Assembly: GCF_006345805.1 (NCBI RefSeq)
Contig: NC_042997.1
Location: forward strand, 155,310,001-155,374,000
Source: Octopus sinensis
Lineage: Eukaryota
Reading direction: 5' to 3'
Length of the DNA: 64,000 bases
Made by a program: the position numbers and the translations under genes. Within the stretch, counting starts at the first letter, position 1. Every line of letters starts with the position of its first letter. Under the pieces are notes generated by a model. The model was given only the letters and a program-made list of their open reading frames with translations, was not told the origin of the DNA and searched no databases. Below are positions 28,469-45,525 of the stretch, in pieces.

Positions 28469-28580
28469 ATGGCACCAAACAGTATATTCCGGCCAAACCT
28501 TTTCAAACATAAAGTAGCAATTGTTACCGGTGGTGCTACTGGACTAGGTTTAGCAATCACAACGGAACTATTGCATTTAG
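28469..28580 (+). CDS. PECR: Peroxisomal trans-2-enoyl-CoA reductase-like SDR, coding exon 1, intact copy (MAPNSIFRPNLFKHKVAIVTGGATGLGLAITTELLHL-G)
   Basis: Rossmann VAIVTGGATGxG motif; TTAG|GTATGG phase-1 donor matches the phase of exon 2 at 44592. Confidence 0.88.
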
Positions 28581-29825
28581 GTATGGATTTTAGAGAGGTG
28601 TTTTCACATTGGGTTTTATTATTGTCAGTACGGTGTTATGAGTAATTGCTGTTTTTTACCTTCTAGTTTTTATCCTCCTCCCTTTTTTATTGATTTCAGT
28701 CATTGGAACGTGATTACGCTGGAGCGTTACCTTCAAATTATTTATTTAGTATTTTATTCAGTATTTATATCTGTCGCTATGTCGAACTATGTACTAAGTT
28801 TCTTTATTTAAAGACACCATACAGTTAATGCTTATTAACATATCGTATATACTCGGTTATAAGTTGCACTTTACTCCCCTGAAATTTTCACCTTAAGTTG
28901 GGGGTGCGACTTATACTTGGAATAACCAAAAAGGATAAAGTATTACATTATAAACAATGGTTTCTAAAGTGCTGGACTGGGGCTAATGCAATTTCGCACC
29001 TCTCCTTAAAAAATGCATTTTTTGAATAACTTTTTTCGAATTCCTACGTTTTAGATGTCGAAAAAGCAAAAAAAAAAAAAAAAAGATTAACCCCCAACCC
29101 TAACCCTTACACCTTAACCCCGTAAAGTTCTTTTCTTTTTTATATATATGTGGGGTTAGGGTTAGGGGAAAAGGGTTCCTTTTTTCTTCAGAAATGTAAA
29201 TAAACCCACGGTACTTGTACCGAAAGATCGCCGTCAATTTTTTTGCAGGTTCGTATTCTCCAAAGCCGAAAACGGGGGTTTGTGTAGAAAAAAAATTAAA
29301 TAAAAAGGGGTGTTTTTAGGGGGAGGATACAAAAGGAAGTCTTGCTGCCGCCACATTTAGTTGACAAATATATTTTATGAATAAATGGACAGGGAATAAA
29401 TAGATAGACAGACAAATAAATAGATAGATGAAAAAAACTTCAGAATTTAAAATTGGGGGAGGGGTGAAATTTGAGCCTCTTTTTAAACTTTGGTATTCCT
29501 TCGTTTTAACTCGATTTTTGTAAACATACTTCTCGGTAATTTCCGTGAACACGTGTTGTCTTGTCAACAGTCAGTTGACAAAATATGAAGAGAAAGCTAA
29601 TGGGTTGTATGTGCGTGGATTGTTCCCCTGTCTATGTGTACGTGCTTGTTCTTTGTGTGTGTGTGTGCATGGATGCGTGCTTACACGGAGGAACAAGCAT
29701 GCACACACAAAGAACAAGCACGTACACACAGAGGAACAAGCACGCATGCACACACACACAGGGGAACAAGCATGTATACACAGACATTGGAACAAGCACA
29801 CATGCACGTACAACCTATTAGCTTA

Positions 29826-30565
29826 GTGAACGTGACCTGGGTGTTATTGTCGACAGTGATTTGCGTTGGACAAAACACATCGCTAAAATTGTCAAGAAGG
29901 CTGAGGGTGTCTTGGCATCACTCACCAAATCCTTTGTGAGCCGCTCTCCGGCTATCTATCTCCGGCTTTATATAGCTATGGTAAGACCTCACCTGGAATT
30001 TGCATCACCGGTCTGGAACCCCTATCTTGCCCAGGATATCAATCGTCTGGAAGCTGTTCAGCGACGTGCAACCAAAAGAATACCCTCCATCAGGCATTTA
30101 CCATATCCTGAACGCCTTACTTCCCTGGGCATGGACACATTGAAACTCCGACGTCTGGCAGCTGACTTGGCAGACTCACATAAAATTATCAACCATCGCA
30201 CAAACAATAACTCTGAGCACCTTTTCAAACTCCACCCATCTAACACCCGTGGACATATTTACAAAGTCAGAAAACAGCACAGCTCCCATGACATCAGGAA
30301 ACATTTTTTCACGCTGAGAGTTGCTGAAGCATGGAACAAACTGCCGGCATCAGTTGTTAGTTGTCGGAGCATTGCATCCTTCAAAACTTCCATGTTTCCT
30401 GAGATTCGCCAACACTACACTTGATTTTCTCCCCTCCATACACACACAAGCATGTATCTGACTCATACATTGTTCACTTTCCAGACATTTCTACATTACT
30501 GTATGCACTTTCTGACAAGTTGTGGTGCACCTGAGCACTATACAATTAATTTCATTATTATTATT
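29826..30565 (+). mobile_element. CR1-clade LINE 3' fragment (open ORF2 C-terminus + 3'UTR)
   Basis: ORF 29861-30424 is nearly identical to the C-terminal half of ORF 20469-21560; (ATT)n tail. Confidence 0.95.
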
Positions 30566-30869
30566 CTTCCCATTTCGTCAACTGACAGTTGACAAGACAA
30601 CACATGTTCACAGAAATTATCAAGAAGGATGTTTACAAAAATCGAGTAAAAACATTAATGTTTGTTTCTCATGAAATAGTGTATATTTAGAGCAGTTGTA
30701 TACTGTCAACTTAATGTGACAGTCCCATAAAGGGAATCACACCACTGCTATTTAGCCCTAGGAAGTATCAACGCTTCCTGTCGGCCATGACAAATTTCCT
30801 GTGTCCTTATGTCTACAAAGGGGAGACAAGCATCTCCATCCAGCTAAGCCTGCATCCAGAGACATGTTG

Positions 30870-44725: not shown

Positions 44726-44801
44726 GTGGGAAGTCGCTGACTTATGTTTATTACTTTTAAGTTCTAATTCTTGATTGTTTCTTTTAAGTTCTTGTTCTTA
44801 A

Positions 44802-45332
44802 CCCTTTAAGATTCAAACCGACCATATCAAGCCCAAATATTTCACCTGTGGAGGCACATGGCCTAGTGGTTGGAACAGCAAACTCGCAGTCAAGGGATTG
44901 CAGGTTCGAATCTCAGACCGGGTGATGTGTGTGTTTATGAGCGAAACGCCTCAGCTCCACGCGGCTCTGGCAGAAGTTAATGACGAACTTCTGCTGACTC
45001 TTTCACCACAACTTTCTCTCACCCTTTCCTCCTGCATCTTGCAGTTCATCTGCAACAGACTGGCGTCCTGTCCGGGTGGGGGACCTATACGCCAAGGAAA
45101 CTGGGAAACCAGCCCGTATGAGCCAGGCATGGCTTGAGAAGGAACAAACAAATATTTCACCTGTTTTATATTCAAAATGGCAAGATTCAGCCACTCACAC
45201 CTACCCTACAATGTCATTATAAGCATAAACAATCATACCATCAAAATCTCAAAACTAAAAAAAAATGAATGGTTAATTCAAAATAATGTGAATAAATGAG
45301 TGTTATATTTGAGTAATCTGTATATTAAAGGG
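44802..45332. mobile_element. piggyBac-type MITE filling PECR intron 2, interrupted by a SINE
   Basis: TTAA|CCCTTTAA ... TTAAAGGG|TTGA. Internal sequence related to the right arm of 6300-6716. Confidence 0.8.
44849..45149 (+). mobile_element. tRNA-derived SINE, family C, with 14-bp TSD
   Basis: TSD AAATATTTCACCTG at 44835-44848 and 45150-45163; A and B boxes present. Confidence 0.92.
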
Positions 45333-45359
45333 TTGAGTATTTTCTATGATAATTTACAG

Positions 45360-45525
45360 GTACAAAACTTAATCTCTTCCACACTATCCAAGTATGGTCA
45401 GCTTGATTTTCTTGTTAATAATGGTGGAGGACAGTTCCCAAGTCGATCAGAGAATATTAGACTAAAAGGATGGAATGCTGTATTGGACACTAACCTAACA
45501 GGAACTTTCTTGTGCTGTAAAGAAG
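45360..45525 (+). CDS. PECR: PECR-like coding exon 3 ([55 protein letters not shown])
   Basis: tttacag acceptor, GAAG|GTCAGT donor, 166 nt. LVNNGGGQF and GWxAVxxTNLTGTF motifs. Confidence 0.95.

Follow-up and report, generated by a model that had tools for sequence, protein, structure and literature searches.

A probable tandem-duplicated alternative first exon of PECR in Octopus, interrupted by a stop codon in the proximal copy of the O. sinensis assembly

Two closely similar first coding exons precede a single exon 2 in the gene studied here, which raises the question of whether both have served as starts of one enzyme and, if so, how the stop codon carried by the proximal copy in Octopus sinensis is to be read. 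The window, meaning the whole stretch of 64,000 nucleotides analysed, comes from O. sinensis GCA_006345805.1 (CM016859.1), and its sequence is identical to that of CM016859.1; the features located in it are collected in Table 1. Judged from sequence comparison, the locus encodes PECR, the peroxisomal trans-2-enoyl-CoA reductase, predicted to be NADPH-dependent. The full O. sinensis protein matches human PECR (1YXM) over residues 5-277 with an E value of 3e-105, and the next structure match is 6LLN at 1e-67; the closest solved relative is thus PECR and not another short-chain dehydrogenase/reductase (SDR). The Pfam family adh_short is matched over residues 15-206 (E 1e-44), as is adh_short_C2, and the PECR proteins of O. 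sinensis, O. vulgaris, and O. bimaculoides all end in KSKL, a PTS1-type peroxisomal signal encoded by an exon outside the window. The human and octopus enzymes are alike in the protein, in the SDR domains, and in the TGGATGxG loop, with nothing different at the protein level; the gene structure differs, in that Octopus has two apparently alternative first coding exons.

Table 1. Features of the PECR locus and its surroundings (positions are those of the window)
Feature	Positions	Strand	Remarks
Upstream paralogous blocks, copy a (putative promoter region)	27546-27785	+	Single-copy, collinear with copy b blocks
Multi-copy repeat inserted some 105 nt ahead of the exon 1a start codon	27838-28364		About 7 copies in the window, 91-96% identity
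Conserved upstream motif, copy a (CCAAAACATAATTTAAAG)	28382-28399	+	Aligns with 41220-41236 and with Argonauta
PECR exon 1a, distal first coding exon	28469-28580	+	Intact, 37 codons + 1 nt; codes the TGGATGLG NADPH-binding loop
187-aa ORF in a multi-copy repeat (29503-30653)	29861-30424	+	Read by eye as a C-terminal fragment of a retrotransposon reverse transcriptase
Degraded LINE retrotransposon	31045-33672	-	Fills much of the 1a-1b interval; RVT_1 E 7e-23, Exo_endo_phos weak (E 1.6e-4)
Upstream paralogous blocks, copy b	40767-41056	+	Collinear with copy a blocks
Conserved upstream motif, copy b (CAAAATATAATTTAAAG)	41220-41236	+	Aligns with the copy a motif
PECR exon 1b, proximal first coding exon	41296-41407	+	Interrupted at codon 28 in the O. 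sinensis assembly
TGA stop, codon 28 of exon 1b	41377-41379	+	TGA in O. sinensis only
160-bp MITE (41427-41586) with flanking duplication	41419-41594		Terminal inverted repeats of about 28 nt; 19 nt past the exon 1b donor
PECR exon 2, acceptor common to both first exons	44592-44725	+	tblastn, translation
PECR exon 3	45360-45526	+	tblastn, translation

Three tblastn searches of the window, whose queries were 120 PECR homologues, full-length PECRs, and the O. sinensis protein itself, recovered no PECR exon other than 1a, 1b, 2, and 3; on this ground no paralogue of exon 2 or exon 3 lies between the two first exons. Exon 4 is found about 29 kb downstream, beyond the window. Three weak SDR-like matches in or close to the 1a-1b interval, all on the reverse strand, were set aside as chance: one at 31057-31212 (E 0.015), which sits within the LINE, and two at 38098-38217 (E 0.11) and 36896-36976 (E 0.38), where the own-protein query gave no significant match. 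ARAGORN predicted no tRNA, and Rfam returned no match within range of the finding. When exons 1a, 2, and 3 are joined, they translate into an open PECR N-terminus of 137 aa, and protein searches with this fragment returned only proteins of at most 240 aa and at most 63% identity, with no close relative in the search of all representatives; the octopus PECR proteins surfaced only once the query was lengthened by a sea-urchin C-terminus, used purely as a search device. A literature search on octopus PECR gave nothing relevant.

Exons 1a and 1b are each 112 nt long, begin with ATG, and end in TTTAG directly followed by the same phase-1 donor, GTATG. They differ by nine substitutions and no indel, and an earlier note on this DNA had counted these as seven missense, one nonsense (TTA>TGA), and one synonymous change, a count that was reproduced here, with ACG/ACA as the synonymous pair; the resulting cofactor loops read TGGATGLG from exon 1a and TGGATGIG from exon 1b. 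The paralogy and shared phase claimed in that note were likewise borne out by alignment, with BLASTN placing 129 nt at 91.5% identity (E 2e-46, far beyond chance), and its failure to find a second exon 2 between the copies agrees with all three tblastn runs. Its proposal of a partial 5' tandem duplication is also supported: exon 1 is the sole PECR exon with a second copy, and around it the paralogy takes in just the promoter-proximal region and the first part of intron 1. The description of the two as exon-1 paralogs needs widening, since the homology is not confined to the exon: it reaches about 400 bp upstream when transposons are left out of the count and continues into the intron once the MITE is removed. 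It can be traced from roughly -400 to +100 relative to the exon, with one further possible block of 84 nt deeper in the intron. The copy a upstream blocks share 80% identity with 40767-40830 and 65% with 40927-41056, and they pair in the same way in O. bimaculoides. A short conserved motif lies ahead of each copy and has a counterpart, CCAAAACATACTTTAG, ahead of the single exon 1 of Argonauta, the stretch CAAAAYATAATTTAAAG being retained in all three places; a role in the promoter or the 5'UTR may be suggested for it from this conservation, and the duplicated upstream sequence would be consistent with a separate promoter for each first exon.

Transposon insertions make up most of the 12.8 kb that separates 1a from 1b in O. 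sinensis, and the interval ranges from 7 to 13 kb overall. The repeat inserted upstream of exon 1a occupies the orthologous site in O. vulgaris and is absent from O. bimaculoides; similarly, the MITE site is filled in O. sinensis and O. vulgaris and empty in O. bimaculoides. For the degraded LINE, the locus comparison revealed no O. bimaculoides counterpart, and no Pfam domain was detected in the 187-aa ORF. A target-site duplication of 8 bp, GAGAGAAG, bounds the MITE on its two sides (41419-41426 and 41587-41594), and the element is predicted to fold as RNA into a hairpin of about 27 bp. Because it was inserted so close behind the 1b donor, it conceals the intron homology beyond that donor.

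Comparison with related species, which the earlier note had called for, dates the arrangement in relative terms. Both copies are present in the same order in O. bimaculoides, O. vulgaris, and O. sinensis, and Argonauta hians has a single exon 1, even with 10 kb of upstream sequence included in the search. The copies cluster by type and not by species in neighbor-joining trees, with bootstrap values of 1.0 for the flanks and 0.88 for the exon alone. The paralogous exons are 89-92% identical without any indel, against 71-80% identity with 6-8 gaps in the 100 nt upstream, and a core of 33 nt is identical across all six Octopus exon-1 copies. Between orthologues, the exons diverge by 5-7%, near the 6-9% of their flanks, and for this reason orthologue comparison alone cannot demonstrate purifying selection on exon 1. 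At the protein level, O. sinensis and O. vulgaris agree with O. bimaculoides at 33/37 residues of exon 1a, 32/37 of exon 1b, and 234/258 of the rest of the protein; 1b has changed at the same rate as the remainder of PECR and has therefore decayed no faster than the gene. Exons 2-9 left no trace between the copies in any of the three species, even with the species' own protein as query and E values up to 20. A search for divergence dates gave assembly identities only.

The annotated proteins indicate how the two exons may be used. O. sinensis XP_029640170.1 and O. vulgaris CAI9716159.1 start exactly with the translation of 1a+2+3, the product of exon 1a forming their residues 1-37, which supports the suggested splicing of 1a to an exon 2 about 16 kb away. 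For O. sinensis, two RefSeq accessions were retrieved; they share one sequence, which is of the 1a type. O. bimaculoides has two RefSeq models, XP_014769608.1 and XP_014769609.1, both of 295 aa, which are the same except for the part encoded by exon 1, where the first corresponds to copy 1a and the second to copy 1b; they are orthologues of the products that would be initiated from 1a and 1b here, and both frames are open there. These models, from that one species, are the evidence for use of 1b, and they favor the period of alternative N-terminus use that had been proposed. A third first exon, belonging to O. bimaculoides isoform X3 (MMSFPKGSL, GC donor), was matched neither in the window nor in O. 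vulgaris.

Codon 28 of exon 1b is a leucine codon (TTA) in O. bimaculoides and a serine codon (TCA) in O. vulgaris, and it is a stop (TGA) in O. sinensis alone; all 1a copies have TTA, and Argonauta has TTG. The stop base is the sole difference in 112 nt between the 1b exons of the sister species O. sinensis and O. vulgaris, the ATG and the donor are intact, and relaxed constraint in 1b beyond the stop was not detected in indels, signals, or protein-level rate. The TGA call is a single base in one O. sinensis assembly. The whole locus differs between O. sinensis and O. vulgaris at 0.67% of sites, a value that we assume to fall within the range of within-species heterozygosity, so that the TGA may be one allele rather than a fixed change. 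The evidence thus supports a proximal copy whose stop, confined to the O. sinensis assembly, is a recent disablement, a polymorphism, or a miscall, and the earlier suggestion that 1b is dead or triggers nonsense-mediated decay in O. sinensis is compatible with the sequence.

Taken together, the locus probably represents a tandem-duplicated alternative first exon that was long kept in Octopus and acquired a TGA in the proximal copy of O. sinensis. According to this explanation, a short tandem duplication in an ancestor of the genus would have copied the beginning of PECR, from the promoter-proximal region through the first coding exon into the first part of intron 1, at some time between the split from the Argonauta lineage and the divergence of O. 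bimaculoides from O. vulgaris and O. sinensis. Two mutually exclusive first exons would have resulted, each equipped with an ATG, a GTATG donor in phase 1, and, presumably, a promoter of its own, and both would splice to the single exon 2 to give two 295-aa enzymes in which about 8 of the first 37 residues differ; this segment comprises the N-terminal tail as well as the TGxxxGxG loop for NADPH binding. Both frames appear to have been open through most of their history. Since codon 28 of 1b is TGA in the O. sinensis reference, only 1a-initiated mRNA would yield the enzyme there; translation of a 1b-initiated mRNA, if one is transcribed, would end after 27 codons, ahead of seven or more exon junctions, and such an mRNA would be an expected target of nonsense-mediated decay, and the TGA may have become fixed.

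Among the alternatives, the one with the most weight, although unlikely, is that 1b still works as a first exon in O. sinensis and that the TGA is a base-calling or polishing error of a PacBio-based assembly or a heterozygous allele. Such a reading would suit an exon that is otherwise perfect in ATG, donor, and frame and is set apart from its O. vulgaris orthologue by the stop alone, at a locus whose divergence is assumed to lie near within-species polymorphism; however, substitution errors in polished assemblies are generally much rarer than 0.67%, the retrieved O. sinensis proteins are all of the 1a type, and codon 28 has undergone a change in O. vulgaris as well (TTA>TCA), which marks the site as genuinely evolving. 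It is quite improbable that 1b survives throughout Octopus only as a nonfunctional relic, with the O. bimaculoides 1b isoform an artefact of gene prediction and the open frames a chance survival. The near-flank divergence of the orthologous exons and the mostly non-synonymous 1a/1b substitutions are what such a relic would offer, but three species have kept the start codon, an open frame of 37 codons, and the GT donor without an indel, against the 6-8 gaps per 100 nt of the paralogous flanks, and the invariant 33-nt core and the ordinary protein-level rate of 1b speak against decay as well.

A full-length enzyme could be recovered from the 1b message if the UGA were edited A-to-I to UGG (Trp), read through, or decoded as selenocysteine, but such recovery is extremely improbable. 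If it did occur by editing or programmed readthrough, 1b would stay functional, possibly as a tissue-restricted N-terminus, despite the genomic stop. Coleoid cephalopods recode their mRNAs extensively by ADAR, and the MITE supplies a strong hairpin nearby in the intron; against this, the predicted fold contains no long duplex around the TGA of the kind that editing requires, ADARs disfavour an A preceded by G, and relatives carry Leu, Lys, Arg, Gln, or His at the position, never Trp or Cys. Little more credible is the view that the gene was once duplicated in tandem as a whole and that exon 1a is all that survives of a copy otherwise lost by deletion. The 7-13 kb interval would leave room for transposons to have overwritten older sequence, but the lack of any trace of exons 2-9 between the copies, the restricted extent of the paralogy, and the use of 1a by annotated functional gene models all count against it. 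The explanation preferred here is accordingly the duplicated alternative first exon.

So understood, the locus would fall within the general class of tandem exon duplications that yield mutually exclusive alternative exons, with which it shares homologous exons of equal length and phase that are joined singly to a common downstream exon. It differs from that class in that a first coding exon was duplicated together with its upstream region, and one copy is broken in one species; because of this position, the choice between exons is presumably made by promoter use and not by splicing competition. Loci with variable first exons, such as vertebrate UGT1A and the clustered protocadherins, are likewise built of tandem first exons, with presumed promoters of their own, and shared constant exons; here, in contrast, there are two first exons of 37 codons each, which encode nearly the same cofactor-binding segment and no distinct substrate- or ligand-binding domain.

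Beyond the two points that follow, no broader consequence is evident, PECR being an ordinary enzyme that is still intact through exon 1a. Current annotation is affected, in that the O. sinensis and O. vulgaris models give the distal start alone and the O. bimaculoides models give both. The locus would offer a clean and datable case of an alternative first exon that was born by a small tandem duplication, long kept, and then lost or being lost in one species, where one base between sister species decides whether the second start is usable.

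PECR, the peroxisomal trans-2-enoyl-CoA reductase of the short-chain dehydrogenase/reductase (SDR) family, has in Octopus two homologous first coding exons, the distal exon 1a and the proximal exon 1b, that share a common exon 2, and gene models using each of them exist. In the O. sinensis window, both exons end in the same phase 1 donor (...TTTAG/GTATG), and a recount gave the 9 substitutions reported in the earlier note: 7 missense, 1 synonymous (ACG/ACA) and 1 nonsense (TTA>TGA), with no indels; the BLASTN alignment of the copies covers 129 nt with 91.5% identity (E 2e-46). 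Joined to exons 2 and 3, exon 1a yields an open reading frame of 137 aa, and exon 1b yields the same frame but broken at codon 28. Every tblastn run against the window, whether with 120 PECR homologues, full-length PECRs or the species' own 295-aa protein, matched just the four PECR exons tabulated below, and none of these query sets found a second exon 2 or exon 3 between the two copies, bearing out what had been noted for exon 2; exon 4 lies beyond the window end because intron 3 extends over ~29 kb.

Features of the PECR locus and of the surrounding sequence in O. sinensis (window positions)
Feature	Position	Remarks
PECR exon 1a	28469-28580	112 nt; ATG start
PECR exon 1b	41296-41407	112 nt; ATG start; TGA at codon 28 (41377-41379)
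PECR exon 2	44592-44725	
PECR exon 3	45360-45526	
Paralogous upstream block	27546-27608 vs 40767-40830	80%; single-copy, collinear
Paralogous upstream block	27647-27785 vs 40927-41056	65%; single-copy, collinear
MITE in the intron 3' of the 1b donor	41427-41586	160 bp; ~28-nt terminal inverted repeats; 41419-41594 with target-site duplications
Multi-copy repeat, ~527 bp	27838-28364	~105 nt 5' of the 1a ATG; O. sinensis and O. vulgaris only
Same repeat family, tandem and inverted copies	25984-27031 and 34533-35265	
Degraded LINE in the 1a-1b interval, minus strand		matches RVT_1 (E 7e-23) and, weakly, an endonuclease
Rfam tRNA match (+)	16404-16479	30.4 vs gathering 29 bits; no tRNA called by ARAGORN; probably a tRNA-derived SINE head or degenerate tRNA
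SINE-like repeat, intron 2	44847-45337	tRNA-like start (GGCCTAGTGGTTGG...GGTTCGAATC); second copy elsewhere in window
Degenerate microsatellite/satellite block, intron 3	53700-55850	~2 kb
Assembly gap	59617-59716	100 N; downstream of the satellite block

The 137-aa fragment matches PECR proteins of many animals, and octopus PECRs were retrieved with this fragment fused to a sea-urchin C-terminus, a query that served as a search device only. The exon 1a-2-3 translation agrees at every residue with the first 137 aa of the annotated proteins XP_029640170.1 (O. sinensis) and CAI9716159.1 (O. vulgaris), in keeping with the suggested joining of exon 1a to exon 2 over ~16 kb. At the nucleotide level, stretches of the window occur unchanged in O. 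sinensis CM016859.1 (assembly GCA_006345805.1). The full-length protein has KSKL at its C-terminus and matches both Pfam adh_short and the human PECR structure 1YXM (E 3e-105); exon 1 encodes its TGGATGxG dinucleotide-binding loop as well as the first beta strand.

Paralogy covers the upstream region, exon 1 and the start of intron 1, with no other PECR exon doubled, which agrees with the partial 5' tandem duplication proposed earlier. Besides the two upstream blocks, ~120 nt immediately 5' of each ATG also pairs between the copies (single-copy, collinear), and the apparent end of homology 16 nt past the donor is an artefact of the MITE, which in both O. sinensis and O. vulgaris lies 19 nt 3' of the 1b donor. 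The site is empty in O. bimaculoides, in which the 1b intron keeps aligning with the 1a intron (GTTTTCACATTG...). In O. bimaculoides, paralogy extends around the exon from about -380 to about +100, and an 84-nt block deeper in the intron may also belong to it. The 8-bp target-site duplication (GAGAGAAG) suggests a hAT-type element, and its ~27-bp hairpin might, speculatively, affect use of the 1b 5' splice site. The multi-copy repeat 5' of exon 1a interrupts a TATA-like stretch (GTATTA/.../ATATAAT) and could, again speculatively, influence the use of exon 1a or 1b. The 1a-1b interval measures 12.8 kb in O. sinensis, mostly transposon sequence that includes several multi-copy repeats and an ORF that may be an RT fragment, and only 6.96 kb in O. 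bimaculoides.

The same order, 1a then 1b, 5' of one exon 2, is found in O. bimaculoides, O. vulgaris and O. sinensis (3/3). Argonauta hians has one exon 1; neither its intron 1 nor the 10 kb 5' of the exon holds a second. Flanks on both sides cluster by copy rather than by species (NJ bootstrap 1.0 for flanks, 0.88 for the exon alone), and the duplication is therefore older than the split of these Octopus species; it is either younger than the Argonauta split or was lost in Argonauta. RefSeq lists for O. bimaculoides two isoforms of 295 aa whose only differences fall within residues 1-37, XP_014769608.1 (MALNSIFRPNLYHHK...GVGLAIT...) from copy 1a and XP_014769609.1 (MKPKSIFRPNLFQNK...GIGLAIT...) from an intact copy 1b, which fits the previously suggested period of alternative N-terminus use. 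A third annotated first exon in that species (locus L001 10001-10028; isoform X3, XP_052827308.1, MMSFPKGSL) lies 6.4 kb 5' of 1a, has a GC instead of a GT donor and gives a product without the cofactor-binding loop; no counterpart was found in O. sinensis or O. vulgaris. Outside the window, the 3' neighbour of PECR on the minus strand, a TIR and HEAT-repeat protein of 437-440 aa, is kept from Argonauta to Octopus.

The paralogous exons diverge by 8-11% with 0 indels, vs 20-29% and 6-8 gaps in the 100 nt upstream, and 6/6 Octopus copies share an unchanged 33-nt core (AAAGTAGCAATTGTTACCGGTGGTGCTACTGGA), in which Argonauta differs at several synonymous sites. Between O. sinensis/vulgaris and O. 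bimaculoides, protein identity is 33/37 for 1a, 32/37 for 1b and 234/258 for the remainder, that is, equal divergence. These patterns fit both exons having been kept in use; orthologue divergence is close in exons (5-7%) and flanks (6-9%), so that this comparison alone leaves constraint unproven. O. sinensis 1a has Pro3 in common with the two 1b copies, O. bimaculoides 1a retaining the Argonauta Leu, and at residue 12 the copy that has Phe in one species has Tyr in the other; this homoplasy leaves room for some early gene conversion and hints at short-tract conversion or parallel substitution.

At codon 28 of exon 1b, O. bimaculoides has TTA (Leu), O. vulgaris TCA (Ser) and O. sinensis TGA; every 1a copy reads TTA and Argonauta reads TTG, which makes Leu the ancestral state. 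Among relatives, most animals have Lys or Arg here, and two sequences with 68-69% identity to the octopus protein have Gln or His, a variability suggesting that Ser may be tolerated. Codon 28 is the sole difference between O. sinensis and O. vulgaris 1b in 112 nt, about the neutral expectation given a locus-wide mismatch of 0.67%. Apart from the TGA, O. sinensis 1b has not decayed, retaining its ATG, frame and donor; its disablement is very recent, polymorphic or a base-call error. That the TGA is an assembly error or one allele of a heterozygous site is plausible, with a fairly low probability. That 1b is a dead relic in every species is unlikely, given its preservation without indels. Recoding of the TGA at the RNA level was also considered, but the predicted fold has no duplex at this site, the A has a 5' G neighbour, which ADARs disfavour, and the position never carries Trp. 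The other exons of a whole-gene duplicate, of which exon 1a would be a remnant, leave no trace in three species.

Each first exon would have its own promoter: the duplication took in ~400 bp of upstream sequence, and copy a, copy b and Argonauta all keep the motif CAAAAYATAATTTAAAG. The PECRs made from the two promoters would differ slightly at the N-terminus. In O. sinensis, productive mRNA would arise from 1a only. Translation of a 1b-initiated mRNA would end after 27 codons, with 28 nt left to the next exon junction and at least 7 such junctions in all still to come, and the mRNA would be an expected NMD substrate. The next in-frame Met is at about residue 143, so a reinitiated protein would lack the cofactor loop.

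Tandem exon duplication is known to give rise to alternative exons, and UGT1A and the clustered protocadherins are well-known variable-first-exon loci. Both O. bimaculoides isoforms were already in RefSeq, and a literature search found no paper on octopus PECR. The analysis confirms the observation of the earlier note and supports its interpretation. The new elements are modest: the duplication is dated to the Octopus lineage, codon 28 occurs in three states, and O. sinensis may have lost the proximal start very recently or be polymorphic for it.
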